This document shows positions 19,601-58,098 of a DNA stretch of 64,000 nt, in pieces. Below the pieces are notes generated by a model. That model was given only the letters and a program-made list of their open reading frames with translations, made no database searches and was not told the origin of the DNA. Every line of letters begins with the position of its first letter. The stretch's first letter is position 1. Location of the stretch: positions 142,639-206,638 of the IMG/VR virus record IMGVR_UViG_3300045973_000169. One strand, given 5' to 3'. A program made the position numbers and the translations under genes.

Positions 19601-22600
19601 AAATGGATAATGCTTGGATTGCTTCTTAACATCTGGCTAATTAAGTCACTAAAGTTTGAACCTGATAGTGATGAATTCTGAATAGATGAAGGTGTTGCTA
19701 ATTCTCTTCCATCGCCTCTGCCTTCAATTTCATACATACCCATACCAGCAGCAGATAGATTAGTTATAGTCCCAATGAACACTGTATCTAAATATCTTGG
19801 ATCAGAGTGATATCCTAGCTTAACACAGATTCTCATCCCTTGACGTAATGGACTTCTTCCACCCATAAAGGAATACATTTCTTCTGTATTAATCTTAGAT
19901 TCATCATCTTGGTTTCTAGTCTCAGTTATCATCTGAGGTTGACCAGTAACCTGATTAACTCCTTTATAACCATAGCGGCTATCATACATTGCTGAGGTTG
20001 TAGTCTTCCTTGGATCAACCACAACTCTACATTTTAGTATATGTGCAGGATTATTTCTATCTCTGATAACCATTAGGTCTTGGAGTAATCTAAAATCCCA
20101 GTAATCATCTAGTGCTTTATATTTATAGTCAGTTAAATTGTCATGTATGATATAAATCTTATATGTTGGATATGCATTCTGGATACCAATAGTTATAGCC
20201 TCTGAGTTATATACTTGTTGTAGTAGATAGTTTTCAGTTGATTCATCTATTTCTTCTCCTGCAGTTTCAATATAGTTTGCAGGGAGTGTATCAGAAATAC
20301 CAGTTGTATTATATTTTGCTCTTAAGGCAATAAGTTTTGCATTATTTTCTTTCCATAATTTGGTGTCATTTACTGACTCATGCATTGCAAGTAATATCTT
20401 TTTCTCTTCTAGTTTAGCCCATTGCTTTTCGTTACTAATAGATGGAGTTACTGATTTTGGCTTTACAGAAGGAGTTACATCAGGAGCATTAACATCTTTA
20501 TATGAAGCCCCTGTCACTCCACCTGGCTTACTAGAAATTGTCTTATGACAAATCTGTGCACTTAAAAACTTCTTAGCGTAGTCTTCTTGTTTTTCATTTA
20601 CTTTCTGGTTTGATAATGGAGCATGTAAATTCTTCATGCTTGTTGCAGATGGTTTGTGTAGAATACCATCAGATGTTAAGACACCCATTGATCTTCCATT
20701 ATCATCATAGACACTTGAAATCCTACTCCCCATATTATTGTCAAATACATCAGTAGGGTCATATGGATTTTTAAGAGAATTTACATTGCCTGCAAATGAC
20801 TCTTTCATATATTTAACAATAGCAGGGTCACCTTTAAAATGATGCTCATTAAACATACATGTAGAGAATTTATTTAAAGCAAAGTCTTTCGTTACAGGTT
20901 GTCCATCATTTTTAAGGATAGGGTAAAATAAACCAGCTCTATTCCCACTTTTATCATTAATCGGATTTCTACTATCAGATGCGAATGATGTTGTATCTTT
21001 TCTCATCGAAGGGATAGCAAGAGTACGTCCTATATTAAGACAACTATTCTCTTTCCCAATCATTTCTTCTTGGAGACCTCTCCAGGTATCTTTAATATAG
21101 ACAGTTTTATATGCATCTGTATCTGTCATATAGTCACCAATGAAATCCATCTCAGTCTTAAGCGTAGATACTTCATCTCCCATCATTCTTAATCTATTCT
21201 GAGAATACCAGTAACCTACTGAATTACTAAACATTTTATTATATGATATAAAGTTATCAACTCTATTAAACCATCTATGAGCTGCATAAGGTTTAGCTAA
21301 AAGAACTCCAGCTTGAAGATCTACTTTTATCTTCTCTCTCATTTTCTCGGTTATAACTTTATCTAATACAGCAGTGCTTGTAACTGTTTCTTTTGTTAAA
21401 GCATTTACGTCTGCTGGCATTTTACTTACACTTAATTGTTTGCTATCCCCTCCAACCTTAAATCCTCTTTTTAAAAACTCACCTTTTAAGAACTCAAGTT
21501 CTCCTAGAGAAATACCATTCAAATCAAATGTAGCTACATATCCATTAACTAACATATAATATGTATTAAAGTTAGATAAGACCTTTTTAAGTCTACCTTT
21601 ATCTGATTCTGATTTAACAACTAATGAAGTTAAGTCTAGTTCTATTTGAACTTCTCCAGGAGCTGAATATACTAACCCTGGATGTTCGGCTTCCCACTTC
21701 TTCTGCAATGCATTAAAATTCGATACAACATTATTTACGAATGCTCCATCAATTCCATCTGCACTATTGGATATAGACTCAGCAAGTTTTGCTTGTTTCC
21801 ATTGTAATCTATCGACTGCATGCTGTCCATTTACATTCTGAGTTACTGAATCTCTACTTTCATAAAATGACTTAGGAGTCTCTGTTGTCTGCATTCCTTT
21901 TGTTTTAGATATTTCATCTAAAGCTTTATTTAGATCAGCAGCAAATCTTTGAGATAGGCCATCAATATCTACGCTAGCAGAATTTCTTACTTTATAAAGC
22001 ATTGAGTCTTTACGTTCTAACTTCTCCATATCCTTAGCCATGTCTTGATACTCAGGCATATCTAACAGATGAGTTATACGTTTTAAACCCCAGTAGTTAT
22101 CAAACTTAACTGGGTCATTATCAGCTCTTGCTATAGATTCAAATATAGTCTTAGAGAATATTAAATTAACATCTGATAGATGTGGCTTCCCATCTACACT
22201 AGAGACTACAAGATTCTGTATAGTTAAAATATTAGCATCAGCAAGATCAAGGATAGGTGTCTGTACTAAGAATCTATTCTCAAAGTTACCAAATCTATCT
22301 GGAGTAATTGATTCTTTATATGATCTTAAAACCTGTCTTACTGCTTCAATGTCAGTTGTCTTAAAGTTAACAGAGACTTGTGTCTCACCAGGTCCAATGA
22401 ATTGAGCTGTTGGGATAGCATGCTCAAGAACAGGAGTCCAAGCAAAGTTATTAGAGTAAGACAAGGATACACTATGAGCATTTTCAGTTATACTACTTGC
22501 AGCTATAAGTTGGATACAGTCATTTTCTGTAAATCTTTTCCCTGCCGACTGTTGCATCAATTCCCAATGTTTATCGGAGAATGGATTATCTATCTTAAAT

Positions 22601-24279
22601 ATATTTATTTCAGATGGAGCATTATGATTAACATTATAAGCATGTAATTGTTTCTCATGTTCAATCATAAAATTATATGGATGAACTGATTCTTCTAAGT
22701 CAAATGTAGGATCAAATGCAGAGTCATCATCTTTTTTAGACTTCATTCTTATTACATCTCTTACTTTAGCCATATCACCAAGAGTAGTAACTGCTTGGAT
22801 TTCTTCATGATATCTAATATACTGTATCTTTTCAGAAGAGTTATTATGGAAGTAAGGCATAGGATTAAATAGAGACATCTCAAGACTACAACCAATACAT
22901 CCTGGGTGTCCTTCTATTGTATAAAGAGTATAAGTATCCATAGTAACAGGGACACAGTATCCTGATAATGATTCATGTCCACTGCCATATTGAGTAGCAA
23001 GGAACTTATTCTCTTTGCTTAGTTTATGAAATATATCTTTAGATCTTATGATATTAATTGGTACATATTTGAACTGTTGTAAGATCCTAAATAGATTATC
23101 ATTTATTCCATGTTCGCCTTGGAATATTAAGTTAAGTTTTATAATTGTTCTGTTAGTGATAGAAGTCATTTGTGGTCTTGACTCCATACCTAATAGTGGA
23201 ACATTTTGCGATGATCTTAACTGAGATATAAGTAAATGAGTTGGAGGAATATCAAGCCATACATCACCAATCTTAACCTTGTCAGCATTATCAGGATTAC
23301 TTAAGTCATATTGTGTCTGCCCTCTCTTCTTGTTGAAGATAGGTTTTAGTTGAGATAGGTGATTATAAAGTAAGTCAGACATATTTGTTTTAGCATCTTC
23401 GAATGCTTTAACTCTTGTCTGTACTTCTTGTGTATGAACTCCAAACCCTTTTTGCCCTGCACATTCTTGTGCTCTACGGAATGCATCTTGAGTCATGGAA
23501 CTATCCCTGTCAGGGTTATTCCAGTTAACATGGTGCATAAGCACAGCACCAGTTTTAACCTGTAGAGCTTCCAAGTCAATCGCAGGGTTACCAAGGCCAA
23601 AGTCGATTTTATAACTTTGTACAGGACGTGGACCTATATCGTCATAGCCTAAATCACTAGGAATAATTTTAGGGTATCCATTAGGATATACATCATTAGT
23701 GTTTCTTAGTGCCTGAGCATTAAGTAACATTTTCTCTGTAATTCTAGCTTGTATATTAGAATAAGGATCAGACTGTCTAATGATTAGATAATCTTTATCA
23801 CCTTCATGTCCAGCTTCATAATAGTATTCATTTTCATCACCCATTAAGGCTTTACTATTCTTATAAGCTTTCCCTGTCTCAAAGGCATCGATTTTTCTTA
23901 AACGACCTTCATCAAAACGAGTTATTCTACCAGTAGAATCTTTTACACCACCAGGAGAGTCACCGTCCTTAATCCATATCATTTCTTTTACTGCCTGTCC
24001 TTGCTCATTAACAATATCTCTGTCTAATGTAATAAGAGGAATATTAAACTTATTATCATAAGTAGGAAGATAGTTATCACCATAAGCTAATACAGGATCA
24101 CTAATTCTAGGGTCACCAAATCTTTGGATAGCATCAAATTCACTTTTTTTATTATCTTTTAGATTGGCTAACTTTTTATCATAATCATCAAAGTTAAACC
24201 CAAGTTTTTCTTTATCAAAAAATGGGATATTACTTATCAGTAAAAGTTCTTCTGTAGAAAGTCCATCGCAAGCTGACAT
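16678..24279 (-). CDS. Giant baseplate hub / tail-associated lysin: N-terminal thermonuclease-like domain, hub-like core, hydrophobic segments, C-terminal SLT lytic transglycosylase (2533 aa)
   Basis: SLT: 'IQRESGWNPKA' (catalytic E2432), 'RGLMQIN', 'FDPKTNIDYGVKYL', 'AVSAYNAG'. Hub-like: 'LRQGMRICVKLGY...TVFIGTITNL'. SNase: DGD105-107, R126, D131, E134. Confidence 0.8.
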   Translation of the reverse strand: MSACDGLSTEELLLISNIPFFDKEKLGFNFDDYDKKLANLKDNKKSEFDAIQRFGDPRISDPVLAYGDNYLPTYDNKFNIPLITLDRDIVNEQGQAVKEMIWIKDGDSPGGVKDSTGRITRFDEGRLRKIDAFETGKAYKNSKALMGDENEYYYEAGHEGDKDYLIIRQSDPYSNIQARITEKMLLNAQALRNTNDVYPNGYPKIIPSDLGYDDIGPRPVQSYKIDFGLGNPAIDLEALQVKTGAVLMHHVNWNNPDRDSSMTQDAFRRAQECAGQKGFGVHTQEVQTRVKAFEDAKTNMSDLLYNHLSQLKPIFNKKRGQTQYDLSNPDNADKVKIGDVWLDIPPTHLLISQLRSSQNVPLLGMESRPQMTSITNRTIIKLNLIFQGEHGINDNLFRILQQFKYVPINIIRSKDIFHKLSKENKFLATQYGSGHESLSGYCVPVTMDTYTLYTIEGHPGCIGCSLEMSLFNPMPYFHNNSSEKIQYIRYHEEIQAVTTLGDMAKVRDVIRMKSKKDDDSAFDPTFDLEESVHPYNFMIEHEKQLHAYNVNHNAPSEINIFKIDNPFSDKHWELMQQSAGKRFTENDCIQLIAASSITENAHSVSLSYSNNFAWTPVLEHAIPTAQFIGPGETQVSVNFKTTDIEAVRQVLRSYKESITPDRFGNFENRFLVQTPILDLADANILTIQNLVVSSVDGKPHLSDVNLIFSKTIFESIARADNDPVKFDNYWGLKRITHLLDMPEYQDMAKDMEKLERKDSMLYKVRNSASVDIDGLSQRFAADLNKALDEISKTKGMQTTETPKSFYESRDSVTQNVNGQHAVDRLQWKQAKLAESISNSADGIDGAFVNNVVSNFNALQKKWEAEHPGLVYSAPGEVQIELDLTSLVVKSESDKGRLKKVLSNFNTYYMLVNGYVATFDLNGISLGELEFLKGEFLKRGFKVGGDSKQLSVSKMPADVNALTKETVTSTAVLDKVITEKMREKIKVDLQAGVLLAKPYAAHRWFNRVDNFISYNKMFSNSVGYWYSQNRLRMMGDEVSTLKTEMDFIGDYMTDTDAYKTVYIKDTWRGLQEEMIGKENSCLNIGRTLAIPSMRKDTTSFASDSRNPINDKSGNRAGLFYPILKNDGQPVTKDFALNKFSTCMFNEHHFKGDPAIVKYMKESFAGNVNSLKNPYDPTDVFDNNMGSRISSVYDDNGRSMGVLTSDGILHKPSATSMKNLHAPLSNQKVNEKQEDYAKKFLSAQICHKTISSKPGGVTGASYKDVNAPDVTPSVKPKSVTPSISNEKQWAKLEEKKILLAMHESVNDTKLWKENNAKLIALRAKYNTTGISDTLPANYIETAGEEIDESTENYLLQQVYNSEAITIGIQNAYPTYKIYIIHDNLTDYKYKALDDYWDFRLLQDLMVIRDRNNPAHILKCRVVVDPRKTTTSAMYDSRYGYKGVNQVTGQPQMITETRNQDDESKINTEEMYSFMGGRSPLRQGMRICVKLGYHSDPRYLDTVFIGTITNLSAAGMGMYEIEGRGDGRELATPSSIQNSSLSGSNFSDLISQMLRSNPSIIHFGRMFGSHIEQFSRRNKNLMNFIMSRANITGLIGTGTSALVTGGTFAGAAAIGMIGASPLAAAAVGTSVGALAYASFGAEGDYGRKMIEAGKMTLFRESCKGNERFSTTFSNLYGRLRGDLFNADKATTQLFRHMADTLENGHNPIDANIFAFDIWASASGSNVTLKANNQRTVWDVLRDIQRIYPGYALDVRPYGSRSTLFLGDPDFHYFRTDDPLLAMAPSFIERSDATRESGNNNDRYRKAIMDYSPRRDTLGNIDPETLSTGILPMVPFQKHHIATSWDNIIYNGVRATPERGWNSVVISKSSDGSGKPEEYVANADIFNHALRRKFAVIDWTNDERLSQQYALGLLKEGVERLYGGTLILRGNSKIEPYDKIYICDKVSKMYGWVQVETVIHKFDSEMGFTTHIVPNMVCKINDTAYSTAGDLRRKYIIGKVSNYWNERGAAGLAIDATSLVLGATTGPWTSLGFSLVANGLLEANKHFAQARENETFVNKYNGLPTDTLDALNKFNWAENVVEWKYSVYADTALAYAGKTAAVVGSSGAKRGLVAAGNSVVQSGRYVFSDVFAGAVKTVFRRITPGEYLSNLMPKKVPDFLNRWATQTADYTRELKAAAVDAALAAETIVDKQVIASMEKILAKKETAWKDLSKSQKDLLKDTKINVNTEKEYEVLLNKMKPKGLFGGKYSAGTKAVGSKLIEGGKKLLGGPLARNVSMLLALSVVMELPSIVEMFAIEAATKGNIVVISPIWFKDSMLMPGLEGYRNNDMWMHMKGMVINAKDAFNEAYSSLSDYEPVKLAADILDPGIQFTGNAFASTPSGSMKLKSYSITEEIVRQDSMFNQLKPMVDEALSKLNGTKKYILEPEVVYGLIQRESGWNPKAIGVQDKNDRGLMQINGKAHPSMDGTHGKDPFDPKTNIDYGVKYLFDLIQTENGDVSRAVSAYNAGHGPQFMKNTDHINAVLSYYWQFKKELGKV

Positions 24280-24282
24280 TAA

Positions 24283-27200
24283 TTAACCTCTGTATTGGTG
24301 CATATCTGATTTATAAGGATCAGTCCCATCCGAACGAACAGAGACTGTATTGTTAAGTCGTCCACCGAAAGCAGCGGAGATAGATGAAATTGAATCATTA
24401 TGGTTTTCTCGTCTGTCTGTTAATAAACCCATGTGCATATTATTCCCCATAGATGATCCCATCTGTCTTGGTGTTCCCATATATCCTCTATGTGAATCTC
24501 CAAATGATGGATTAGATACAGAAGGAAGATCATTTATATCTTCTGGAGTCCCATCCCCACCAAGTACATTTAGTGCAGTCATTGCAACTAAACCTGCTCC
24601 AAGAGCAAGTCCAACTTTCCCTGGAGTAATTTTACCCATAAGATTTCTTACTTGCTCTGCTCCATAAATTTCTCTCTTAGATATCCCTTTTACAATAGAT
24701 CCATGTAGTTCAGGATTAATAAATGACTCATGACCTAAGTGTCTCTGTAAGTTTGAGTCTCCAAGAAGACCTTTAAAGAATCCTTCTTCGCTATCTCTAT
24801 GTTGTCTTATAACTGCATCATAGCTTTCAGAAGCAGAGAAGTGACCTGTCTTCTTTAGGTCTTCTATAAAGTCGAAATAACTATGAGATGTAGTATATCC
24901 CATATTCTTAAAAGCTTCGGTTTCATTTGTGAATGTCATTCCTTTTGTCTTCTCTACATAAGCAGCAGCTCTAGTCTTAGCTAGTTCTGGAGTAAACCCT
25001 GGAAGTAACTTTAATGCATTCTCTACCTCAGTTGCTCCTTCACGCTTAAACATTGTATGTATATTAGTTAATGTTTCGAATTCTTTCTTAACGTTATTCT
25101 TTGACCCTTCACGTAAGAAAGCAGGAACTTCACCATTCCTATTCTGTACTGCATTTAATGTATTGTATAGATGTAATGCACCAACTTCACCTTGTAACTC
25201 TGCAAACCCAGTTAGAGCTTTCTCTTTAGTTAGCTCTCCCATGTTGGCAACCATGTGATCTATTTTGTTGGTTACACCAAGCATCTTCTCTACGTGCTTT
25301 GAAGATATAGACCCCTGGACAATTTCTTTAGCAGGGATATCTATTGCATGAATCATTGCATTCATCTGTTGTTCTTCAGATAGAGATGAATTTCCAATAA
25401 TCTTGCTCATCATTGCATTAGTCATCTCTTTGGTTCTTACATGCGCTGAACCAGTAGTTCGTTTAGTTAACCAAGCTGCAGTAACAGATTCTTTTTCAGA
25501 ATATGCCATAGCCTTAGTCAAATCATCTAATCTGTCTGCATGTGGGAGGAAGTAATTCTTAGATTCATTATTGAAAATAGCCTGTAATGAATTCTTCTTA
25601 TTTTCTTTTATCGCATTGATAACATCATGTGACATGCTTTGTTCTTTTAAGATTCTATCATATACATTAGATCTGTTTTGAGTATGGAATAAGAATTTAG
25701 CAAATGCAATATCACCGTCATTATCAGCATTCATTAATGTTCTTAGGCGATGTCCGAATGCTATAAACTTACCACCTTCGACATATCCTTTATCTGTAGC
25801 AAATGTGAAAGATAAAGCTTTAGAAGAAGAATAGATATTAGGGAAACGGTCTACAAATGTAGACTGTCCCGCTCTCTCTATTAATGAAGCTGCTTTATCA
25901 TGTTGTCCACTTTGGACTAACGAATGTAATAAGTCATAATCTTTAACAGATTGTTGAGCTATACTATGACCTACTTGTTTAAATTTATCTCCTGAAGCTA
26001 TATCAGCATAATGCTTTTCGAATATATTCCCTTTACCAAATCTATCTTCTAAGAAAGAACTAATTGTTTTATTATTATCCTTAGCTGTTATATATGATTT
26101 CTGTAATTCATCAGCGATAGAAGATGCATATGTTTCTTTGTCAATTACAGTAGTGTTACCAAATAGATGGTCTAGCTTAGATCCTTCTTCAATACTGCCA
26201 ATTAATTCTTTATTATTAATAAGATGAGTATCGGCAAATACTTTATCTAGTGAAGCTCCCTCAACTTGGAAAGCGCCTCTTCTTAAGTATCCTTCTTTAG
26301 ATGCCATATTACCAGTCGCTCTAATATCAATTAGCTTCTGATAGTTACTACTGCTAATCACTCCACCATTATTCTTTGCATCAACTAATATCTGTGTTTC
26401 TAATCTAACATCTCTAGAAACAGCTAACCTTTCTTCGTCATCTAAGTATTGTGACTTCTGATAAAAATCTCCAGATCCGAAATAAGCTAATCTCCCATCT
26501 TCAGTTGCAACACCAAATCCTTTGGCATTAACATCTGGGTTAAGAAATGATTTAGTCATTAAATAAGGATCATCTATATTGCCGCCTTTGATTATCTTAC
26601 CATCGGCAAGCATCTCTTCAAGCCCTTCTTTATTCAGGACTTTAACTCCAGTCTTCTCCATCTGTCCAGCTAACTTAGGATCTTTCATGAAGTTCATATA
26701 CATCTGACCTTCAGATAGAATCTTCCTTGAATCAGTTAAACTACTTCCTGCAAGCTCTTCCATTACTTTACTTGGAAGCAGATATGGCATATCATTGACA
26801 CCCATTCTATAAACATTATGTCCTATCCCTTGAGTATATAAACTCTCTTGAGGAAATATAGTTGACATGATATGGAACTGATTTATATTCTTAGTTTTAT
26901 CACCAAGGCTCTGTAAATGATCTGTCATTAAATCAGCAGCATCATTATAAGAGATATCTTGTGAGCCGCCTCTCATATGTCCTAGTAATCTAGTCATTAA
27001 GTTTATCTGTTCTTTCATCGGGCCAGCCCCTTGGTCGAACTGTAATCTCCCTTGTCGTGCTAGCTGAGTAAGATTCCCAGTAAATCCTCCTACATATTTA
27101 GATAAACTTTTTGTAAGGTTCTCATTTAATACAACATCTTTTTCTGCAGCATAAGCGTGTCCAGCTACCATTGACTGTAATGTAGTTAACATACTCCCTG

Positions 27201-29262
27201 CGCCTTTACCTGCAATTATACCATCAATCCCATCTTTACCTATAGATGAAGGAAATACTTTCTTGAAGAAATCGAGAGACATATCGAAACTAACATTCTT
27301 GCCATACAGAGCAGCTGTTTCTTGTGGCATTAATTGAGCAGCACTTCTTAGATCATGATAAGTTCCTACTTTAGTAAGGGCCTCAACACTTTGACCATAG
27401 AATGTTTTCTCAATTGTTCCTTCTCCGAATCCTCTTAATGTTCTTGCAATATCTTCTTTAGTCTGGATAACCTTAGTATTTGTTGTAACTAAACCATTAG
27501 AATGAGACATAGCTCTATCATATGAAGCAGCAGTATCTATCTGATTATTGGCAGTACCTAACCCAACTACAGTCCCAGGTCTTAGTTCGATCCTTTCAAC
27601 TTGGCTTAATGTTTTTGTATCATTATATAGGTCAAATAGAGTCTTATCACTGTGTGATTCTCCACCGATTATATATGTAGGATTCATTAATTTAGTCATA
27701 GCCTGTTTTTCACTTGGTAATCCACCCCAAGTATATCCAGTCTTTGCTTTCATCTCTATGGCTCTAGAAACCCTCATATTATCTTTTAAACCAGGGGCGA
27801 ATTGGATAACCTCTTCTGTATGTGGATTTATTACCCCTAGCATTGTTGCATGCCCTTGGTCATAAACCTGTCCATAAGCTAAAGGATTAGTCCCTTGAGC
27901 TAAATGACTCCAAACTAAAGGTAGGTTCTTATCAATATTTTCACCAAAACGTCCATGGAATTTAAAGTCTTTCATAGATTTGAGTGAGTCGATACCATTC
28001 CCTTTAGTCATGGTTGGGAAGAATGTAGATGTCCACATAGCCCCTTGACTCTGAGAAACATTATATCCAATGAATTCATTTATCTGTTGTTGTATTGGAG
28101 AATGGATACCTCTAAATTTATTATTAGCATTACCTCTTGCTACTTCATTCATTCCAGCTACTGCATTAATGGCTTCTGGTTCTATTGAGTGTAGACTATT
28201 TAATGAAACATTAGACTCCATCGCTCCCCTAAGTCCAGCATTTTCCATTTCATGTAAACCATAGATATCATTCTTTACTGTACGCCCTAACCTTTGGATC
28301 TTCGCCGGTGAGTTCCCTTCTGCCCACAATAGATGACTGCTAAGGTTTTTAAATAGTTGTTTGATGCCATGCATCTCATGGAAATCTTTAACTATTCTTT
28401 CAGCATTAGTCTTGCTCTCAATCATCTTTACATGAGCAGCAGCATCTTTCCCTTTAGTCCCTTTTCTTATAATATCATCATAATGGAGAACATCTCTTAC
28501 ATCTCTGGCATTCCCAGAGTTAGCTGTAATTAATGCTTTCTGATTATTAGAAATCATATCTAAGACATATTCATTATAAGACATGAATTCAGATCCAACT
28601 ACATTCTTACCTTCAAGTGTTGGTCTCCTAAAGTAAGGAGCCACATAATGTGCTCCTTCTTTATTTCTTACAATCCAAGCTCCAGTCTCTTCGTCGAATT
28701 TTGCTAAAGGAACTTCTACGCTATGATTACCTATCTTTACACTTAAAGATGTACTAGCTCCAACAGCATCTTCTCTCGTAGCTGTAATCCCTAGTTTCTT
28801 TAAGTTTTCTAATACCTTAGACTGGACATCTACATTATCAATAGAATAGACACCTTTGTTTAGGTTAACTCCATGGACAGTAGATCCATTAGAGAATCTT
28901 GCTATTTCTTCAGCGGTTATATCAATTCCAGTCTCTTTGAGTCCAACACTGTTTATGCTATTAATCTTCTCAATCATAGAAGTGTCTCTATGAGCATAAG
29001 TAGCTTTCTTCATCTCCATCCCACGCTTTAAGCCTGTGTCTATAGAGTCTGCTATATTAGATATACGTCTCTGTAATGGGGTTTGACTTGGGTTAGTTAA
29101 TGGCATAACCTTATCTAATATATTAGTTAGTTGCCCACCTAACCAACCTTCTGGCTCTCTATTAACTTTATATAAAGTATATGCTGAAGCACCTAGTATC
29201 CCAGTCATCCCTATCTTCGGGACGATTGAATCATTGTATTGTTCATAAGGTCTATTAGACAT
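24283..29262 (-). CDS. Putative single-chain two-barrel (DPBB) RNA polymerase, probably virion-packaged (1659 aa)
   Basis: NADNDGD (aa 1178-1184, nt 25711-25731) is preceded by R1139-F-P, KEGYLR (aa 989-994) and a beta-like K631-VGTY-H636-DL-R639. The motifs occur in beta-then-beta' order. Confidence 0.75.
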   Translation of the reverse strand: MSNRPYEQYNDSIVPKIGMTGILGASAYTLYKVNREPEGWLGGQLTNILDKVMPLTNPSQTPLQRRISNIADSIDTGLKRGMEMKKATYAHRDTSMIEKINSINSVGLKETGIDITAEEIARFSNGSTVHGVNLNKGVYSIDNVDVQSKVLENLKKLGITATREDAVGASTSLSVKIGNHSVEVPLAKFDEETGAWIVRNKEGAHYVAPYFRRPTLEGKNVVGSEFMSYNEYVLDMISNNQKALITANSGNARDVRDVLHYDDIIRKGTKGKDAAAHVKMIESKTNAERIVKDFHEMHGIKQLFKNLSSHLLWAEGNSPAKIQRLGRTVKNDIYGLHEMENAGLRGAMESNVSLNSLHSIEPEAINAVAGMNEVARGNANNKFRGIHSPIQQQINEFIGYNVSQSQGAMWTSTFFPTMTKGNGIDSLKSMKDFKFHGRFGENIDKNLPLVWSHLAQGTNPLAYGQVYDQGHATMLGVINPHTEEVIQFAPGLKDNMRVSRAIEMKAKTGYTWGGLPSEKQAMTKLMNPTYIIGGESHSDKTLFDLYNDTKTLSQVERIELRPGTVVGLGTANNQIDTAASYDRAMSHSNGLVTTNTKVIQTKEDIARTLRGFGEGTIEKTFYGQSVEALTKVGTYHDLRSAAQLMPQETAALYGKNVSFDMSLDFFKKVFPSSIGKDGIDGIIAGKGAGSMLTTLQSMVAGHAYAAEKDVVLNENLTKSLSKYVGGFTGNLTQLARQGRLQFDQGAGPMKEQINLMTRLLGHMRGGSQDISYNDAADLMTDHLQSLGDKTKNINQFHIMSTIFPQESLYTQGIGHNVYRMGVNDMPYLLPSKVMEELAGSSLTDSRKILSEGQMYMNFMKDPKLAGQMEKTGVKVLNKEGLEEMLADGKIIKGGNIDDPYLMTKSFLNPDVNAKGFGVATEDGRLAYFGSGDFYQKSQYLDDEERLAVSRDVRLETQILVDAKNNGGVISSSNYQKLIDIRATGNMASKEGYLRRGAFQVEGASLDKVFADTHLINNKELIGSIEEGSKLDHLFGNTTVIDKETYASSIADELQKSYITAKDNNKTISSFLEDRFGKGNIFEKHYADIASGDKFKQVGHSIAQQSVKDYDLLHSLVQSGQHDKAASLIERAGQSTFVDRFPNIYSSSKALSFTFATDKGYVEGGKFIAFGHRLRTLMNADNDGDIAFAKFLFHTQNRSNVYDRILKEQSMSHDVINAIKENKKNSLQAIFNNESKNYFLPHADRLDDLTKAMAYSEKESVTAAWLTKRTTGSAHVRTKEMTNAMMSKIIGNSSLSEEQQMNAMIHAIDIPAKEIVQGSISSKHVEKMLGVTNKIDHMVANMGELTKEKALTGFAELQGEVGALHLYNTLNAVQNRNGEVPAFLREGSKNNVKKEFETLTNIHTMFKREGATEVENALKLLPGFTPELAKTRAAAYVEKTKGMTFTNETEAFKNMGYTTSHSYFDFIEDLKKTGHFSASESYDAVIRQHRDSEEGFFKGLLGDSNLQRHLGHESFINPELHGSIVKGISKREIYGAEQVRNLMGKITPGKVGLALGAGLVAMTALNVLGGDGTPEDINDLPSVSNPSFGDSHRGYMGTPRQMGSSMGNNMHMGLLTDRRENHNDSISSISAAFGGRLNNTVSVRSDGTDPYKSDMHQYRG

Positions 29263-29264
29263 TG

Positions 29265-32200
29265 TTAATACCCATAACTAAACTGTGAGTGGATTAGATC
29301 ACCATATTGAGACTGTGATCTTTGTAAGTAATCTGCATGTCCATTTGTTTCGATATCTATACTTGTCATAGTATTCGGTGACATGGTTGGGAACATCTGT
29401 ATATTTGAAGCTCTATCATCTTGTATTATATATGAAACTATTCTGTTAATAGTTGAATTTGTTGTTGATCCTGCTGACTTTAATTGGTGTGATGCTAAAT
29501 TAGCACCATGATCAAATACTGCTTCTCTCAATTTATTATCAAAGAAACCATAATCTTGTATATTCTCTCCACCTTCTTTAAGTGCTAATAACTCTACATT
29601 TTCAATATTAACATCAGGGGAATAGCCTATCCAATCTTCTTTAGGCATATCATGAGACTTCATATATTCTCTTACATACCTAGCTCTTATCCAATCAGCT
29701 TTATTAGCATTTCCTCCAGTTTCATTCATATACATCTTACTCTCTTGACCTGACATTCCCCAACCTTCGGTTTCCTGTAGGTTCATATAAGCTTGTTGTA
29801 CATTTATATCATCTGAAGATTCAGCTAACTTCTTGCTCCATATTGCATTGTATAATCTTCTAGCACCTCTAGGGATATACTTCATGATCTTCCCGCGTTT
29901 CTTTGGGTCAGGCTCATTAGCAAATCTAGAGTAATAAGCTCTTTCATTTTCAGGCAAAGCAGCTAATTCATCTCTTGTATTATCATCAGTTGGGTCAGCC
30001 CCTATCATTGTAGAACGCCACATATTATGATAGTAAGTTGCATCTTCTTCATTGCCAGTTTTAGATGCTTGTACTGCTAACATCTTATATTTGACATATT
30101 TAAGAATATCCCAATACTCTTGGTTTTGTCTTCTTTCAACAGTGAATCCTGGTAGGTGATCTACACCAAACCATTGGTGCATAAAAGAAGATATAGCAGG
30201 AGCCAATAGATGTTGGATAGGGTGTGACCATAACTTAACTTCACGGTTAAATACTTGGTTAGTTAAGTAATTATCTAAATAGTCTTTTTTAGGGATTAAC
30301 TTATTAGCCCAGAAGGTCTGGTCATTAGAAATAGTCCCCCAGTATTTAGCCATTGCTCTCCCAGCATATCCAACTTCATCCTGTTGCATATTGAATTCTG
30401 AAAGATTTCCAGTATTAGTTCTTGCTGCTCCTGCTTCTATTAGATCTGAACTAAGATCTCCTATTAATGCTTCAGTCCCAGATTCAGAATTATTCATCTG
30501 ATCTGCAGATGGAGCTTGAAAAGAAATACTCTGACCAATGCCAATACGTGATGCTATAATTTGTGATGTCCTTGCTCTTGCCTCTTCTGCTGCTCTTGCT
30601 AATTCTGATGTTGAACTAAACTTTTCTTTTAATAGTAAATTAGCTCTTATATCCGCTTCTGAGGTTGAAACACCAGCGATCCTATAGCGAGTATCATCAC
30701 CTTCAAGAGTAAAGCTTCCTGACTCATCTACGGAGCTTACAGTGCCATTAACTGTATCAGTATTTAGTCTATAGTCGTACTCTGATTTAGATGTATAAAG
30801 TTTATCTTTGAGTTGTCTTACTTGGTCTAATGTTTCATAGAATCTTTGCTCATCGCCTAAAGATAATTGGTCTTGTAATGTTTGATGCATTACTTTATGA
30901 GATTGATTTCTAAACTCTTGTGTAAATGGAGCTATGGACTGTAATATCTCTAGCTTTTCAGGATCAGGATATTGTTCTAGTTCTTTCCCTTTTAATTCTG
31001 GGTAAAGATTCTCCCAACCTTTTCTTGTAGAATATAACCATCCTAAAGGAGTATTATCAAATGTAGTCCCATGAGTTACATCATTAGTATATCTTTTAAA
31101 TGCATCTTTCTTAGTGCTTTCTTGAGGGATCCAAGATACACCATTAAGTTCATTTGGTAAGTCATTGATTTTCCAATCCTTCATAGGATATGGGAATATA
31201 CGTCTTAAGAATTCTCCACCTACTCCAGAAATATCTCCTAGCTTCCATCCCCACATCTGTTGAGCTGGGTTATAGAACTCTCCTGCATTTTCTTTATAAG
31301 GAACAAACTGATCTGTAGATTCACCAGTTATATATTGTTTCGCAGTCTCATATGCGAATCCAGTGAAACCAATTAAGTCATGGTATTGTCTAGACCATCT
31401 ATCCATAAGATCTTTATTAGATCCTTCTGACTGCATCCCAATAGCTCTAGCTAATTCCATATTAGATGCACCAGCGCCCCTCATCCCAATTGTAGTAGGA
31501 GTATAAGGTTGAGGTTGTGTCCCTTGACTAGTTAGTTCATGATATACTCTAGTTGGTTTAATTAAACGTCCTATTGTTGCTGCTATAGGTTGACCAATTA
31601 AAGGGATGTTTGCCCCAAGTGGAGCTGACTCATATACTGGCTGATCTAACTTATGATAATTCTCTAAGATGTATGGTTTATATAATCCAAATGTTGCATT
31701 ATGTAAAGCTCTCTCCCAATAGTTAGGATATACAACTCCTCTATTCTCATAGTCAGATTCAATTACACTAAACATATGCTTTCTAAATTGGATAGGAGTT
31801 CCACCCTCATAAGGAGAAGAAGACAATAACCAACCTCTATACTTACGAACTGCTACTTCCTTATCACCAGCATACTCAGCTTTTCTTTCTTGATATGTTT
31901 TATTAGAACCTAAAACCCCAGGGAGAAATGGTAACATTGGTACCATCATAGCTGCGAAAATAGCCTTCTTAGGATTTCTTAGTGCCCAACCTGCATATCT
32001 TTCAAAGTGAGTTTTAGTTAAAGCACCAGCATAAGCTTCTGTTCTTAGAGCATTTTTTATGAAACTATTCTTACCGAACCTAGTCCCAACATTTCTTAGA
32101 TATTGCTTTATACCAACTGGGCCTTTATTGTAAAGGTATTCTCCAATTTTAAAGAATGAAGTTGCTGTTAGTGCAGGAGCTAATATGCCTAACCTAGTAG

Positions 32201-35111
32201 ATCCTGGAGCCACTTTTTCTTGCTTCTTTGTCAGTCTTGTGAATCCAGTTATATCTGATATCTTACTATAAAGTAATGTAGCTCCTTCGAAAGCTTTGAT
32301 AGGCCCCATAGTTAAAGGTCCACGACCAGTAGGACTCATTGTTATTGCACCTAGTAAATGGTCAGTAAGTCTGAAAGCTTCCCATGCAGCCATTACAGGC
32401 AGTGCACGTTTAAGCCCAAACTTAACTCCATACTCTAAGAAGCCCATATTATGAGTATAAGTTGCTAATCCTAAATGAGGTCTATTGATAACTCCAAGAG
32501 CTTTACCCGCTAATCCTTTGATAAGACTATTTGATGACTTTAATTTAGATGCAACCTTATCAAGTTTATTGCTATCAATCCCAAAGAATCCAAGTTCAAA
32601 AGGAGATTCCATAAACCTATTCCATCTATCAAGCATGAACGTTCTAGTAGGAACACCTATCTCTCTATATCTATTTTTTATATTCTGATATGTATGTCCT
32701 GGAAGAAGTATCTGATCTACTTGAGCCAAGGTTTTTGTATTAGCTGAACCTTTAGGCATCCAGTCACTAAATATATTAGCGCTCTCTCCTACACCTTTGG
32801 GTCCTAACTCAAGATTAAATTGGGTTTTCTTATACATACTCCAGAGCCATTTCCACTCTGGGTTATTTTTAATAGATGCAGGTATCTCTTGTTTCTTCAT
32901 CCATTCAGCACTAGAAGGCCAAACTGCTCTTCCTGATTTAATTTGTTGATGTTGCATTTCCCAATAAGTAGTTGGATTTGTTATATGATTTTCACCATAT
33001 CCTTTCCCGAATCTATTTATTGAGTTAACTCCTGACATGTTAGCATGTCTTGTATTCCTTAGCTTAAATGTAAATGGCAGAGTTAGTTGTTCAGTTTTTT
33101 GTAATACTCCACCTTCAAGTGTGTCTTGAGCATAAACAATCATTGCTCCATTATCTGCTGTAGCAAATCTTATTTCTTTAGAAACAATCTTCTTGGCACT
33201 TGAACTTATTTGGTCTTTCGGTGTAAGCCAAGACTCAAGTTTATTATAATCCTGTTCTGGTATTAGTCTTTTCGAGTTCTCTAATATATCAGTAAAGTCA
33301 ACTCCATGGACATAATCTCTTGTCCCATCTATCCCAATAGATTTGCCATCTCTGATTGTTTTGAAGACCTTATCATATTTTCTAATCTTCCCTTCAATAG
33401 CGGCTCCTTTTTTATCACCACGGAACCAATCTATAGTACCACCTACCTGTAAGACTCTAGTGATATTATGAGAACCTTCGATTGTCTTAAGTCCTCTAAA
33501 CATAGTATCAGTGATATTCTTTCTTGAGAAATCAAATGTTGCTTTATTGTTTAAAAGTCTTGGAGACATGATCTTACTATAAGCTCCAACTCCATATAAA
33601 AATGCACCAACCCCAGTTACTCCTTTAGCAATCGTAGCAACCTGAACAAATGAGTTATGTTTATCTTCAAAGAATGTACTGTAATTAGGAGCATGTGGGA
33701 GCCCAAGATTGTTAATCTTCATCTTATCAGAGAAAGGACTTAATGAATCGTCCCCTCTTAATCCATAGGTAGCTAACAGTCCTAGCCCTACTATGGTACC
33801 CATTGCACCCCATCTTAACTTATTAGCCCCTTTAAAGGCTTCAGTCATCTGACCTGCCATTTTAGAACCTTCAAACATAGATGGATATTTTGAGTAAGAT
33901 TCTAGTATTGGCTTTAATTGGTGAGTTAGATCTTCTATTATTGGGCTAAGTTTATTTTCTGATTGTAATAATTTAGATAAGTTGCCATGAACATCGCCTT
34001 TAATTATCTGGTCAACAGTTATTCCTGCCTTATTTAACTGGCTAAGAATAGCTTTCTCTATTTGTTTCTCAGTACTTACATCTAGTCCTGCAGCATGGCC
34101 TTGGACTAAATCTTTTCCAAAGTGTTTAGATACAATAGCAGCAGCCTTCTCCGCACTATATCCACCAGCATACTGGAACTCTTCAAAATTTAAAGGTACA
34201 CGTCCAGGTCTCCCTGTCGCTGCAGCAGCAACTGGATTATATCCAATCCTAAACATATTACCAAGCTCAGGATTCTCTTTCCCAAGCTGGTATAAGAATG
34301 CTTTGTATGCTCTCTCAACCTCATCTGTTTGGATTATCCCTTGCTGATATGCAGTATAAAGAGCTTTAGCTTCATCAGCAGCTCCCATCTTAACTAGCTC
34401 TGACATATATAAGTTAATATCGAAATAAGGATTCCATGCTCCTAATCTAACTGGAGCTTCCTTAGTTCCCATCTTAAGCATATTAACTACATTCTTCTTT
34501 AAGAATCCTTGGAACTGTTCATATGTAAAGTCACCAGCATACTCGACGCCTTCTTTCTTAAAGATGCCTTCTAGTGCTCCAGCTTTACTCTTTATTAATT
34601 TACCATCTTTCACACTAAAGTCTTTAGATTTTAATCCTAAGTCTAAGTTTCCTTTAGCAATAAATATATGCCCACCATTCTCAGTAGGGAGTTTAAATAG
34701 AGCATCCATTTGAGATACTTGGCTTGGCAGTATTCTCTTCTTATACCAATCTAATTTCCCACCCTGTAACTTAGACCAAGATGCACCAAATAAACTTTCT
34801 AGATCTCGCTCTGAATGTTTTGGAATTAGATAAGATTCTACCTGTCCGAACCCTTTAAGATGTCTTACATACTTAGAGTCTGGATTAACAAAGTCTGGGA
34901 GTTTATGTCTATTATTAAAATCAATCCCATAATGTTTAATAGTATTAGTCTGACCATCATGAATAGCAAACTGAGTTACATCAACGTGACCGAAGTGTAA
35001 GAATGCATCAGTAGGATTTAATACAGTTGTACGACCAAGCTTATCATAAGCCTTAGTTAAACCAGTATTTAATCCTATTGTTTCAAAGTCTACTATTAAT
35101 CTTCTAGACAT
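29265..35111 (-). CDS. Tape-measure-like / ejection protein with N-terminal DEDDh 3'-5' exonuclease and a degenerate thermonuclease domain (1948 aa)
   Basis: ExoI VD8FE10TIG, ExoII WNPYFD231, ExoIII H339AAGLD344. Several Gly/Ala hydrophobic segments. It directly follows the tail chaperones, the usual tape-measure position. Confidence 0.7.
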   Translation of the reverse strand: MSRRLIVDFETIGLNTGLTKAYDKLGRTTVLNPTDAFLHFGHVDVTQFAIHDGQTNTIKHYGIDFNNRHKLPDFVNPDSKYVRHLKGFGQVESYLIPKHSERDLESLFGASWSKLQGGKLDWYKKRILPSQVSQMDALFKLPTENGGHIFIAKGNLDLGLKSKDFSVKDGKLIKSKAGALEGIFKKEGVEYAGDFTYEQFQGFLKKNVVNMLKMGTKEAPVRLGAWNPYFDINLYMSELVKMGAADEAKALYTAYQQGIIQTDEVERAYKAFLYQLGKENPELGNMFRIGYNPVAAAATGRPGRVPLNFEEFQYAGGYSAEKAAAIVSKHFGKDLVQGHAAGLDVSTEKQIEKAILSQLNKAGITVDQIIKGDVHGNLSKLLQSENKLSPIIEDLTHQLKPILESYSKYPSMFEGSKMAGQMTEAFKGANKLRWGAMGTIVGLGLLATYGLRGDDSLSPFSDKMKINNLGLPHAPNYSTFFEDKHNSFVQVATIAKGVTGVGAFLYGVGAYSKIMSPRLLNNKATFDFSRKNITDTMFRGLKTIEGSHNITRVLQVGGTIDWFRGDKKGAAIEGKIRKYDKVFKTIRDGKSIGIDGTRDYVHGVDFTDILENSKRLIPEQDYNKLESWLTPKDQISSSAKKIVSKEIRFATADNGAMIVYAQDTLEGGVLQKTEQLTLPFTFKLRNTRHANMSGVNSINRFGKGYGENHITNPTTYWEMQHQQIKSGRAVWPSSAEWMKKQEIPASIKNNPEWKWLWSMYKKTQFNLELGPKGVGESANIFSDWMPKGSANTKTLAQVDQILLPGHTYQNIKNRYREIGVPTRTFMLDRWNRFMESPFELGFFGIDSNKLDKVASKLKSSNSLIKGLAGKALGVINRPHLGLATYTHNMGFLEYGVKFGLKRALPVMAAWEAFRLTDHLLGAITMSPTGRGPLTMGPIKAFEGATLLYSKISDITGFTRLTKKQEKVAPGSTRLGILAPALTATSFFKIGEYLYNKGPVGIKQYLRNVGTRFGKNSFIKNALRTEAYAGALTKTHFERYAGWALRNPKKAIFAAMMVPMLPFLPGVLGSNKTYQERKAEYAGDKEVAVRKYRGWLLSSSPYEGGTPIQFRKHMFSVIESDYENRGVVYPNYWERALHNATFGLYKPYILENYHKLDQPVYESAPLGANIPLIGQPIAATIGRLIKPTRVYHELTSQGTQPQPYTPTTIGMRGAGASNMELARAIGMQSEGSNKDLMDRWSRQYHDLIGFTGFAYETAKQYITGESTDQFVPYKENAGEFYNPAQQMWGWKLGDISGVGGEFLRRIFPYPMKDWKINDLPNELNGVSWIPQESTKKDAFKRYTNDVTHGTTFDNTPLGWLYSTRKGWENLYPELKGKELEQYPDPEKLEILQSIAPFTQEFRNQSHKVMHQTLQDQLSLGDEQRFYETLDQVRQLKDKLYTSKSEYDYRLNTDTVNGTVSSVDESGSFTLEGDDTRYRIAGVSTSEADIRANLLLKEKFSSTSELARAAEEARARTSQIIASRIGIGQSISFQAPSADQMNNSESGTEALIGDLSSDLIEAGAARTNTGNLSEFNMQQDEVGYAGRAMAKYWGTISNDQTFWANKLIPKKDYLDNYLTNQVFNREVKLWSHPIQHLLAPAISSFMHQWFGVDHLPGFTVERRQNQEYWDILKYVKYKMLAVQASKTGNEEDATYYHNMWRSTMIGADPTDDNTRDELAALPENERAYYSRFANEPDPKKRGKIMKYIPRGARRLYNAIWSKKLAESSDDINVQQAYMNLQETEGWGMSGQESKMYMNETGGNANKADWIRARYVREYMKSHDMPKEDWIGYSPDVNIENVELLALKEGGENIQDYGFFDNKLREAVFDHGANLASHQLKSAGSTTNSTINRIVSYIIQDDRASNIQMFPTMSPNTMTSIDIETNGHADYLQRSQSQYGDLIHSQFSYGY

Positions 35112-35683
35112 TATAAGTATCCATTCTCGTCATCACTCTTCTGTAATGCAATTTTAAGAGACTCAAGCATTTCTTTAGTAATACCTTTAACCCCAGTTTT
35201 AATCTTAGGATTACTTTTTACATTTTCTTGTTTAATATGTTCTCTTAATTTAGTTGTATCTATTAGTGGTTGATGGTCTACCATCTCTGCAAATGCTAAT
35301 AGCTCAAGTAACTCATTAAGAGTCTTAAGCTTTAGTTCATCTAATCTATAATTTGGTTGGGTAGAAACGATCTTTGCATAAATAGGATAATATGTATTAG
35401 ATGTTAGAGTCTTACGGATATTATCTATCTCATCAGGAAACTGTTCTTTCTTTAATATTACTCCGGATAACTTAAATGAAGTATAAACTATTAATGGAAT
35501 AGTCCCTGCAGAAAGATCTTTATCTGCATATTTATTATCTGTTATTAGATTAAATATATATTCTTCTAGATAAGGATTACTTTCTTGTTTAAGAGCAAAG
35601 TAGAACCTGTCTGCTTCTTCAGCAGATATAGTCCTAAACTCTATATCTAGATTATCTATAGTAGGAATTTTAAAATATTTCAT
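35111..35683 (-). CDS. Putative tail assembly chaperone (paralogue 2)
   Basis: Shares 'FRTISAEE...AGTIPLIVYTSFKLS' with 'FKKLSWAE...AGVALTLVYQILVMS' of 36465-36869; directly precedes the tape-measure-like gene. Confidence 0.6.
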   Translation of the reverse strand: MKYFKIPTIDNLDIEFRTISAEEADRFYFALKQESNPYLEEYIFNLITDNKYADKDLSAGTIPLIVYTSFKLSGVILKKEQFPDEIDNIRKTLTSNTYYPIYAKIVSTQPNYRLDELKLKTLNELLELLAFAEMVDHQPLIDTTKLREHIKQENVKSNPKIKTGVKGITKEMLESLKIALQKSDDENGYL

Positions 35684-35697
35684 GAATGGCTATATCC

Positions 35698-36423
35698 TTA
35701 TTGAATATCTTTTAGTATTAGTTCTATATTTTTCATTTCCCAATAAGGAATTTCTAATAACTTAATATTGTTATCTTTACAATACTGCTTTTTAGTACTA
35801 TCTCTTTGTTGTAAACTTACAAGAGCCTCATTACCTCCCCAGTATTTAACAGACCTATAATGTTGCATCCCATTAAACTCTATACAAACCTTATGGTTTG
35901 GTAGGTAGAAGTCAAATCTCAATGGGAGCCTTTGGTCTTTAAAGAATAAATTATCAAATGTTTTTTGCTGAATATAATCAATGTAATTATTCTCTAGCCA
36001 TTTTTTAATTCTTATTTCGCCTTTTGAAATATTACACTTAGGACATCCTTGTCCTTTTAAGTGATCATTTGGGGTTTGCCAAAAACTCCCATGCTTATGG
36101 CATATAATACAAACCTTAATTTTGCTTTGTTTGTATTCAACTAAAGAATAATCAAATTTATTTTCATGGATAGTTTTTGCTTTTCCTAAGAACTCAGGCT
36201 TAGACATTTTTGAACTATTCCCAATTATAGAATAATAACACTTTGGGCAACCATTTCCTTTTAAATGATTCTCAGGGGCCTGTTCAAATTCTCCATGCAA
36301 ATTACAAACAATAAGAACTTTTGTTTTATTATTTATATATTCAACCTTAGAGTAGTCATATTTAAAATTATGGATTTGATTAGCTTTATCAATAAGGTCA
36401 TTAGCAGTTAATCTTTTAGGCAT
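35698..36423 (-). mobile_element. Free-standing homing endonuclease-like gene (two zinc-ribbon repeats plus Vsr-like PD-(D/E)XK nuclease domain)
   Basis: Two repeats 'YDYS.VEY....KV.I.C..HG.F.Q.P..HL.G.GCPKC', then 'SKGE..I..WL', 'RFDFYLP...IEFNGMQHY'. Confidence 0.85.
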
Positions 36424-58063: not shown

Positions 58064-58098
58064 TAAAAATCCTCCAAACTTCATATACAGATACACCT

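Follow-up and report, generated by a model that had tools for sequence, protein, structure and literature searches.

What does a phage encode in the tape-measure position of its tail operon when the giant protein in question carries the metal-binding motif of RNA polymerases? The question is raised by an open reading frame (ORF), here called ORF B, that lies in the last 64 kb of the 206,638-bp contig IMGVR_UViG_3300045973_000169; this 64-kb stretch is the window analysed here. An earlier reading of the DNA letters (hereafter the original prediction) had proposed that ORF B is a hidden single-chain RNA polymerase with two barrels that is packaged and injected. We conclude that ORF B very probably encodes a working RNA polymerase of the two-barrel type in a single chain, and that it is a sequence orphan. 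The genome that carries it is that of a jumbo contractile-tailed phage distantly related to Bacillus phage 0305phi8-36 and Acinetobacter phage ME3. The window has a G+C content of ∼35%, and every ORF of at least 130 amino acids (aa) is on the minus strand. ORF A and ORF C, giant genes as well, flank ORF B, which is located as follows:

24283..29262, minus strand: ORF B, single-chain two-barrel RNA-polymerase-like protein of 1659 aa, with an ATG start and one open frame.

When residues 380-1560 of ORF B were compared with 1.84 billion cluster representatives in an index-free HMMER scan, 18 relatives came up, 14 of which are full-length (∼1700-1850 aa) at 20-42% identity. Three further relatives on IMG/VR contigs bring the family to 21. 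Every member is carried by a phage contig, the longest of the contigs read being 401 kb, and a search of 185,579 bacterial and archaeal genomes yielded no relative. The motif strings quoted in the original prediction all sit at their quoted residues when checked in the ORF B translation: KVGTYHDLRSAAQLMPQE corresponds to residues 631-648, FDMSLD to 659-664, KEGYLR to 989-994, RFP to 1139-1141 and NADNDGD to 1178-1184, with the distance of 39 residues between R1139 and N1178 as claimed. NADNDGD is the sole DxDxD across ORFs A, B and C.

According to Ruprich-Robert and Thuriaux, eight residues are common to all two-barrel polymerases: three Asp, an Arg and a Pro in the beta'-like barrel, and two basic residues and one Asp in the beta-like barrel (PMC2919709). 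Seven of these eight signature residues are invariant in the ORF B family (17 sequences). The 14-sequence alignment holds 40 invariant columns out of 1659 (2.4%), among them K631, R639, R1139, P1141, D1180, D1182, G1183 and D1184, and these positions all stay invariant in the 17-sequence set. The invariance of DxDGD, K631 and R1139, which had been put forward as a check of the polymerase assignment, therefore holds in every homologue found. The elements concerned, with the eighth residue given as a candidate, are:

27793..27825, minus strand: PHTEEVIQFAP, ORF B residues 480-490, holding E484 (E or D in 17/17).
27346..27372, minus strand: K631 and R639, the invariant basic pair of the beta-like barrel (17/17 each).
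27205..27207, minus strand: K686 (GKG), a further invariant lysine in the family alignment.
25840..25848, minus strand: R1139-F-P1141, the invariant R-x-P of the beta'-like barrel (17/17), aligned to E. coli beta' R425-A-P427.
25711..25731, minus strand: NADNDGD, residues 1178-1184, the metal-binding aspartate triad (D1180, D1182, G1183 and D1184 invariant in 17/17).

When the family was compared with E. coli beta' by hhalign, a single match was obtained, of residues 1127-1193 to beta' 415-473 (E = 0.0025). It sets R1139 on R425 and P1141 on P427, and places NADNDGD in register with beta' NADFDGD 458-464, with all three Asp invariant, so that both resemblances named in the original prediction were borne out; the block has a model confidence of ∼90 (see below). 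Equivalents of the R-x-P are R446/P448 in Rpb1 and R962/P964 in QDE-1 (PMC2919709). The same comparison with E. coli beta gave no significant similarity. For the beta-like half, K631 and R639 are separated by 8 or 9 residues among the 17 sequences and stand on adjacent strands of the model (E240-254 and E260-265). Judged from this spacing and from the beta-type fold matches, they would be equivalent to the beta lysines (Rpb2 K979/K987). The beta-barrel carboxylate, which is D837 in Rpb2 and D709 in QDE-1 (PMC2919709), has E484 as its candidate counterpart, i.e. the beta-side fourth metal-binding carboxylate and eighth signature residue. E484 lies 147 aa ahead of K631; this candidate spacing is like that of Rpb2 (142 aa from D837 to K979) and unlike the 29 aa of QDE-1 (PMC2919709). 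An acidic pair at 603-604, ∼28 aa before K631 and hence at a QDE-1-like spacing, was also considered as the fourth metal ligand and was rejected, as it is not conserved.

An AlphaFold2 model of residues 380-1560, built on an 18-row alignment, reached a mean predicted local distance difference test (pLDDT) of 69 and a predicted template modelling score (pTM) of 0.47, with blocks around both motif regions at 80-93. When the model was searched with Foldseek against the PDB, the best 50 matches were RNA polymerase large subunits in 50/50 cases, with probabilities up to 1.00; a fold search was one of the checks that the original prediction had put forward. They comprise both beta-type chains (Pol I A135 7aoc_B at E = 2.6e-4, 5m3f_B and Rpb2 7lbm_B) and beta'-type chains (Thermus, Mycobacterium and E. 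coli), as well as phage enzymes (AR9 7s01_d; PhiKZ 8que_A and 7ogp_A). Around the triad the model runs in the order strand ending in R-x-P, strand, strand, helix, DxDGD loop, strand, in agreement with the beta' barrel. The predicted order, with a beta-like element first and a beta'-like element second in one chain, is confirmed. A Foldseek search against BFVD gave unannotated phage proteins as its top matches and recognised polymerases next; A0A7R7G2L5_2 was matched at 2.9e-10 and a piece of a 'minor tail protein' of Siphoviridae sp. ctnpt50 at 1e-9. Two proteins of the Acinetobacter jumbo phage vB_AbaM_ME3 are among these matches, together with poxvirus and jumbo-phage RNA polymerases and, weakly, pieces of crAss proteins (E = 6.5e-3 to 7.6e-2). 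At the level of the model, the nearest predicted structures to ORF B are unannotated phage tail or virion proteins.

Two further elements lie downstream of the triad. The bridge helix of beta' carries ALKTAxSGY, and the trigger loop reads QLTMRTFH in beta' and QMTLNTFH in Rpb1, following the pattern Q-x-[ST]-x-x-[ST]-x-H. ORF B contains L-T1266-K1267-x-x-T-G1271-S at the kink between long helices, and QGSISSKH at a helix end followed by a low-confidence loop. We take residues 1262-1290 and 1316-1323 to be candidate counterparts of the bridge helix and of the trigger-loop tip, by resemblance rather than by alignment. T1266, K1267, G1271, Q1316 and K1322 are invariant in 17/17 sequences, while S1320 is found in 16/17 and H1323 in 10/17. 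The two elements are:

25393..25479, minus strand: bridge-helix-like long helix, ORF B residues 1262-1290 (T1266, K1267 and G1271 invariant).
25294..25317, minus strand: trigger-loop-like QGSISSKH, ORF B residues 1316-1323.

Other resemblances named in the original prediction fared less well. In the K-H-R region, which had been likened to beta GDKMAGRHGNK, the K631/R639 pair is invariant, whereas H636 is kept in only 3/17 sequences. FDMSLD had been compared with beta VDIVLN, and the family shows merely a loose hydrophobic-S-[FW]-D pattern at this place. KEGYLR had been read as switch-2; K-x-G is fairly well kept but the remainder is not conserved, and the model has a short helix and then three strands in this region. 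Since H636, FDMSLD and KEGYLR are not conserved, these resemblances have to be dropped or downgraded, the last to the following entry:

26281..26298, minus strand: KEGYLR, ORF B residues 989-994, a possible switch-2-like element before the first beta'-like barrel strands (K-x-G moderately conserved).

The assignment of ORF B to a known polymerase family was examined by several sequence methods. Pfam and PHROGs gave no match with ORF B, and across 14 aligned members Pfam gave a single weak RNA_pol_Rpb1_2 match in one member (E = 0.076). RdRP (PF05183) did not match any of 14 family members even at E = 10; as a control, 0305phi8-36 gp99 matches this profile at E = 1.2e-18. Searches of the PDB by sequence and by family profile returned chance-level matches to unrelated proteins (E >= 0.16), which were disregarded. 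No hit at 1e-5 was obtained by tblastn of ORF B against 50,697 phage records; at E = 10, Erwinia phage PhiEaH1 gp147 appeared over the bridge-helix/trigger-loop stretch (E = 0.6), and it was dismissed as a chance match because hhalign shows no relationship. A word-indexed search of 5.8 billion proteins, with the protein and with the family profile, returned the query itself alone.

The original prediction had called ORF B a YonO/crAss-type enzyme. The chain layout agrees, since YonO of SPbeta and gp99 of 0305phi8-36 also have a beta-like barrel before a beta'-like one in one chain, but the affiliation itself has not been established: there is no RdRP match, and QDE-1, phi14:2 gp66 and the P23-45 enzymes are all absent from the best 50 PDB matches. 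By its sequence, ORF B is not a member of the YonO/QDE-1 Pfam family (PF05183). The gp99 string GGADTDGDK resembles the family pattern NADxDGDxI, and gp99 comes from the same broad phage lineage; hhalign of the ORF B family against gp99 aligned 20 residues around DxDGD (E = 0.079). However, gp99 is encoded outside the structural module with no virion note in its record, whereas ORF B is in the tail operon, and ORF B is larger than YonO and gp99 and has terminal hydrophobic segments. The multisubunit enzymes provide the best solved-structure matches, and their beta' is in register with ORF B at NADxDGD and R-x-P; they differ in that ORF B has both barrels in one polypeptide and no alpha- or omega-like partners. 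PhiKZ-type virion polymerases, unlike ORF B, are capsid cargo of four or five subunits.

A precedent is P23-45 gp96, a clamp-less flat polymerase fused to the tape measure that transcribes pre-early genes during DNA entry (PMC10770324). It has in common with ORF B a single chain with two barrels, a gene at the tape-measure position of the tail operon, a DxDGD triad, membrane segments and an absence of polymerase sequence similarity beyond the motif, and the role proposed for ORF B, first transcription during DNA entry, is also the same. In contrast, gp96 is the N-terminal part of a 5002-aa tape measure with a metallopeptidase domain in a non-contractile siphovirus, whereas ORF B is a separate protein of a contractile jumbo phage; the cell-wall enzyme here is an SLT domain on the next gene (ORF C), and Pfam found no metallopeptidase in the trio of giant genes. 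There is no sequence similarity between ORF B and gp96, and P23-45 structures are missing from the best 50 PDB matches. Comparable features are seen in phi14:2 gp66 (PDB 6VR4; 10.1101/2020.03.07.982082), a giant virion-delivered single-chain two-barrel enzyme with DxDxD that is hidden from sequence searches and adjoins genes of other giant ejected proteins. The crAss enzymes are capsid cargo of podoviruses, while the ORF B gene lies in a myovirus tail operon; neither tblastn, PDB sequence nor profile comparison matched ORF B to gp66, and 6VR4 is not among the best 50 PDB matches. A functional analogue is the N4 virion RNA polymerase, which is described as a giant protein ejected with two other proteins that transcribes early genes (PMC13434306); it differs by its T7-like single-subunit, unrelated fold and by its place in the capsid of a podovirus.

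Stops bound ORF B, which is thus a separate gene set closely against both of its neighbours. The stop of ORF A lies 2 nucleotides (nt) ahead of the ORF B ATG and in another frame, and the ORF C ATG lies 3 nt past the ORF B stop, preceded by a GAGG ribosome-binding site. This agrees with the original prediction of a stand-alone gene; polymerase and tape measure in one polypeptide, as in P23-45 gp96, is not what is found here, and the relatives of ORF B are stand-alone in 7/7 other contigs. ORF B (1659 residues) and ORF A (1948 residues) contain no cysteine, and ORF C contains 0.6%. No paralogy was found among ORFs A, B and C. Hydrophobic segments had been predicted at both ends of ORF B. The C-terminal one is strong, whereas the N-terminal one, at a Kyte-Doolittle value of ∼1.0 (hand calculation), is below the threshold of 1.5 of the hydrophobicity scan and was not flagged by it, yet it is conserved in the family. 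The segment equivalent to residues 1550-1568 is also present in ME3_36 and 0305phi8-36 gp146, and the PSF[GS]DS motif of the C-terminal tail is common to ME3_36; this tail is a candidate anchor to the phage tail or hub. The terminal features are:

29170..29226, minus strand: weakly hydrophobic glycine-rich N-terminal segment, ORF B residues 13-31 (family consensus GTGxLxGxxYGxYK).
24559..24615, minus strand: predicted transmembrane helix, ORF B residues 1550-1568 (Kyte-Doolittle 1.84, conserved).
24286..24558, minus strand: polar C-terminal tail, ORF B residues 1569-1659, highly conserved (GDGTPEDxNDLPSVNNPSF ... YNTVSVRSDGxDPYK).

ORF B is encoded in the tape-measure position of the tail operon. 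Transcription would pass in turn through the sheath, the tube and its paralogue, a 464-aa gene, a 134-aa gene, HNH, a 190-aa gene, ORF A, ORF B, ORF C (SLT), three small genes, baseplate J and tail spike; the succession of sheath, tube, tube paralogue, chaperone-position genes, A, B, C, small genes and baseplate J is the same as in 0305phi8-36 and ME3. The neighbouring features are:

40346..42856, minus strand: tail sheath, from a weak match to phrog_16991 (E = 3.4e-8) and the sheath position in ME3 and 0305phi8-36.
39659..40291, minus strand: tail tube, from gene order against 0305phi8-36 gp140 and gp141.
38304..39569, minus strand: tube paralogue, from gene order against 0305phi8-36 gp140 and gp141.
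36465..36869 and 35111..35683, minus strand: two small genes in tail-chaperone position, that of the 0305phi8-36 gp143 and gp144 chaperonins.
35698..36423, minus strand: free-standing HNH homing endonuclease (phrog_559, E = 2.9e-61).
29265..35111, minus strand: ORF A, 1948 aa, homologous to ME3_35 and 0305phi8-36 gp145, with a hydrophobic segment at residues 1050-1068.
34032..35111, minus strand: DEDDh-type 3'-5' exonuclease-like domain, ORF A residues 1-360, from motifs and an AlphaFold model.
16678..24279, minus strand: ORF C, 2533 aa, homologous to ME3_37 and 0305phi8-36 gp147 (baseplate hub).
16759..17037, minus strand: SLT lytic transglycosylase domain, ORF C residues 2415-2507 (PF01464, E = 3.5e-20).
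14172..15365, minus strand: baseplate J-like protein, downstream of the trio.

The order A-B-C is kept in 7/7 other contigs (up to 401 kb), one of which was read without its DNA. Every other contig extending far enough shows a recurring block of genes of ∼133 aa, ∼190 aa, A of ∼2000, B of ∼1700-1800, C of 2200-3200, three small genes and one of ∼396 aa, the size of a baseplate gene. ME3_35 and gp145 are BLAST homologues of ORF A, as are ME3_37 and gp147 of ORF C. The GenBank record of 0305phi8-36 lists gp145, gp146 and gp147 as virion proteins by mass spectrometry, with the labels 'hypothetical tape measure protein' for gp146 and baseplate hub for gp147. ORF C of two relatives has a glucosaminidase domain in place of SLT.

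Several observations concern the neighbouring genes themselves. Tube and tube paralogue both match phrog_9206, which is labelled 'major head protein', a label that looks misleading. The HNH gene separates the two chaperone-position genes that adjoin in all relatives examined. The DEDDh motifs of ORF A (D8-x-E10, W226-N227..D231 and H339-x4-D344) are invariant in 5 homologues (22-49% identity), motifs I and II being parted by a ∼215-aa low-confidence insert. The model of ORF A residues 1-360 (pLDDT 61, pTM 0.62) has its best fold match in the N-terminal and exonuclease part of the RB69/T4 DNA polymerase (E = 1.6e-3, probability 1.0) and also matches the Pop2 RNase; Pfam gave no match in this region. 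In the homologue of ORF A on the 401-kb contig, Pfam recognises additional nuclease-like regions, PF18741 and DUF559. In this lineage, enzymatic domains seem to have moved about between the three giant tail genes. Further away, among virion genes, lies an ORF (52602..55631, minus strand) for a 1009-aa protein in which a subtilase domain (Peptidase_S8, E = 6.8e-23) precedes chitobiase-C and Fn3-associated-like repeats. It shares 10 nt with the next ORF, 55622..58096, whose product is a tail protein containing an Fn3 domain, and both have non-ATG starts in the mechanical ORF list. A tRNA scan of the window found none.

Among cultured jumbo myoviruses, the slot of ORF B between the homologues of ORF A and ORF C is filled by ME3_36 (ME3_35, ME3_36, ME3_37) and by gp146 of 0305phi8-36 (gp145, gp146, gp147). 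ORF B, ME3_36 and gp146 all have a C-terminal hydrophobic helix followed by a polar tail of ∼100 aa; in ME3_36 the helix lies ∼110 aa from the C-terminus, and PSFSDS stands where ORF B has PSFGDS. ME3_36 has R1174-E-P and, 43 residues on, GGDHDQD. One of the two ME3 matches of the ORF B model in BFVD is the 802-aa second piece of a protein, which is exactly half of the 1603 aa of ME3_36. BLAST and hhalign of the ORF B family against ME3_36 and gp146 gave no significant similarity, and with hmmsearch the family profile matched no protein of the ME3 and 0305phi8-36 trios. As these profile comparisons are negative, what links ORF B with ME3_36 is synteny, the order of the motifs and a single fold match; the middle gene of the trio evolves too fast for BLAST or hidden Markov models (HMMs). 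gp146 differs from ORF B in having no DxDxD; it carries instead, from residue 1223, the string DIETTG, which is exonuclease-like. In the account of Hardies et al., gp146 is the tape measure and gp99 the phage polymerase (PMC2147016), and the sole 0305phi8-36 entry of Iyer et al. is gp99, ABS83659.1 (PMC7824862). ABS83659.1 was considered as the slot equivalent of ORF B and rejected, since it is gp99 and lies near the right genome end. The literature searched contains no description of ME3_36 or gp146 as a polymerase, and none for the middle giant gene of this lineage.

A second locus of ME3 deserves mention. ME3_309 (798 aa, 'hypothetical') ends with ...VRNPS and ME3_307 starts with ...AEHSDVDGDH, and ME3_308 between them looks like a zinc-ribbon-repeat homing endonuclease. 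To judge from these strings, ME3_309 and ME3_307 look like one unannotated two-barrel polymerase gene split by an intron/homing-endonuclease insertion. The length of ME3_309 equals that of A0A172Q0S6, a BFVD entry found among the matches of the ORF B model (E = 3.8e-8). ME3 may have a pair of virion and non-virion polymerases, like P23-45.

The results have to be weighed against other explanations of the locus. A chance collection of motifs in a large unrelated protein might be invoked, as no sequence method recognises a polymerase and as the D.DGD motif alone is not beyond chance: it is expected 0.027 times in a protein of the size and composition of ORF B and, by extrapolation, ∼0.4 times in all open frames of the window taken together (22,955 aa). 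The motif set is nonetheless above chance, because all six catalytic residues named beforehand (K631, R639, R1139, D1180, D1182 and D1184) fall in the 2.4% invariant columns; moreover, the best 50 PDB fold matches are all RNA polymerases and hhalign sets the barrel in register with beta', so that this explanation is effectively refuted. It could also be argued that ORF B is a structural tape-measure or ejection protein in which an inactive polymerase-like relic serves as a scaffold or DNA-binding module. Its tape-measure slot, the lack of the Asp triad in the slot-equivalent gp146 and the degenerate GGDHDQD of ME3_36, which is without the glycine and shows that the element can drift, would all fit such a relic. 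However, the three Asp, the Gly, the R-x-P and the basic pair are invariant over 17 sequences at 20-42% identity, and bridge-helix-like and trigger-loop-like residues are invariant too. The invariance of catalytic residues amid such low identity points to selection on chemistry rather than on shape, and we consider a relic quite improbable. Conversely, we regard it as highly probable that ORF B has the two-barrel fold and is catalytically competent.

An active enzyme need not be a virion component. ORF B could be a real two-barrel polymerase that is made late and acts in the infected cell, for example in late transcription or priming; gp99 of 0305phi8-36 and apparently ME3_309/307 are two-barrel genes outside the structural module, so this lineage does use non-virion enzymes of the class. 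Against this, ORF B is translationally packed between genes whose homologues are virion proteins by mass spectrometry, and its position is conserved in 7/7 other contigs. The conserved transmembrane-like helix and tail at its C-terminus recur in the slot equivalents and would be superfluous in a soluble cytoplasmic enzyme, and a polymerase made only alongside late structural genes has no obvious intracellular task. A purely intracellular enzyme is therefore unlikely in our view. Packaging and injection of ORF B, suggested by its gene position and by the virion-protein homology of its neighbours, are reasonably probable, and so is the best explanation as a whole, namely that ORF B is a catalytically competent, virion-packaged and injected polymerase.

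Several points nevertheless weigh against this preferred explanation. Against solved polymerases, the model gives fold matches of modest E-value (2.6e-4 at best) and low TM-scores (template modelling scores) of 0.1-0.3, and the model behind them has a pTM of 0.47 and an alignment of 18 sequences. The two double-psi barrels are deduced from fold matches and strand order of the predicted model rather than seen directly. Sequence and profile searches (Pfam, PDB) recognise no polymerase family, and the eighth signature residue is represented by a candidate, E/D484. The linkage between ORF B and ME3_36 is undetectable by HMM; gp146 lacks DxDxD, so that the slot does not always hold a polymerase, and was assigned as the tape measure from tail length (PMC2147016). 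A folded protein of ∼180 kDa cannot pass the tail tube without unfolding or an unusual flat shape.

If ORF B is a packaged polymerase, the following course of events can be proposed. The beta-like barrel would supply K631, R639 and probably E484, and the beta'-like barrel R1139-x-P and the D1180/D1182/D1184 magnesium triad, followed in the chain by the putative bridge-helix-like and trigger-loop-like elements. ORF B would be assembled into the tail together with ORF A and ORF C, either as part of the tape-measure complex or alongside it. The hydrophobic segments at its ends and its conserved C-terminal tail would hold it at the tail or hub first and at the membrane later. Once the sheath contracts, ORF B would exit through the tube; the lytic transglycosylase of ORF C would open the cell wall, and the hydrophobic segments of A, B and C would engage the membrane. 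The polymerase core, acting presumably on a DNA template, may then transcribe the first-entering phage genes without the host polymerase, as do P23-45 gp96 and phi14:2 gp66.

A broader reading can be offered only tentatively, and we would not yet give it preference: across an ancient lineage of jumbo contractile-tailed phages formed by 0305phi8-36, ME3 and the metagenomic clade, the supposed tape-measure gene might be an active polymerase, injected through the tube of the contractile tail with a giant exonuclease-bearing partner and a wall-cutting hub, and might represent a previously unrecognised two-barrel clade. Since the solved neighbours of ORF B are multisubunit enzymes and its beta-side spacing is Rpb2-like, such a clade could stand between the cellular and the phage single-chain enzymes.

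Virion-associated single-chain two-barrel polymerases are known already, and ORF B is the first one proposed for a contractile-tailed jumbo lineage. The known settings have so far been two, the crAss-like podoviruses (capsid cargo) and the Thermus siphovirus P23-45 (tape-measure fusion); if our interpretation is true, ORF B would add a third, the first in contractile-tailed phages. It would then have to be explained how a polymerase of ∼180 kDa gets through a rigid tail tube. The putative nuclease that is probably delivered together with the polymerase would be of interest in its own right. Our results also support a screening approach in which DxDGD, homologue invariance and fold search together find polymerases missed by HMM libraries, and we suggest that giant 'tape measure' or 'hypothetical' genes of cultured jumbo phages, e.g. 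those of ME3, be re-annotated and tested. The new sequence-orphan family of 21 members widens the diversity of the enzyme class that transcribes all cellular genomes, and it offers a route to explain early transcription independent of the host polymerase in this phage lineage.

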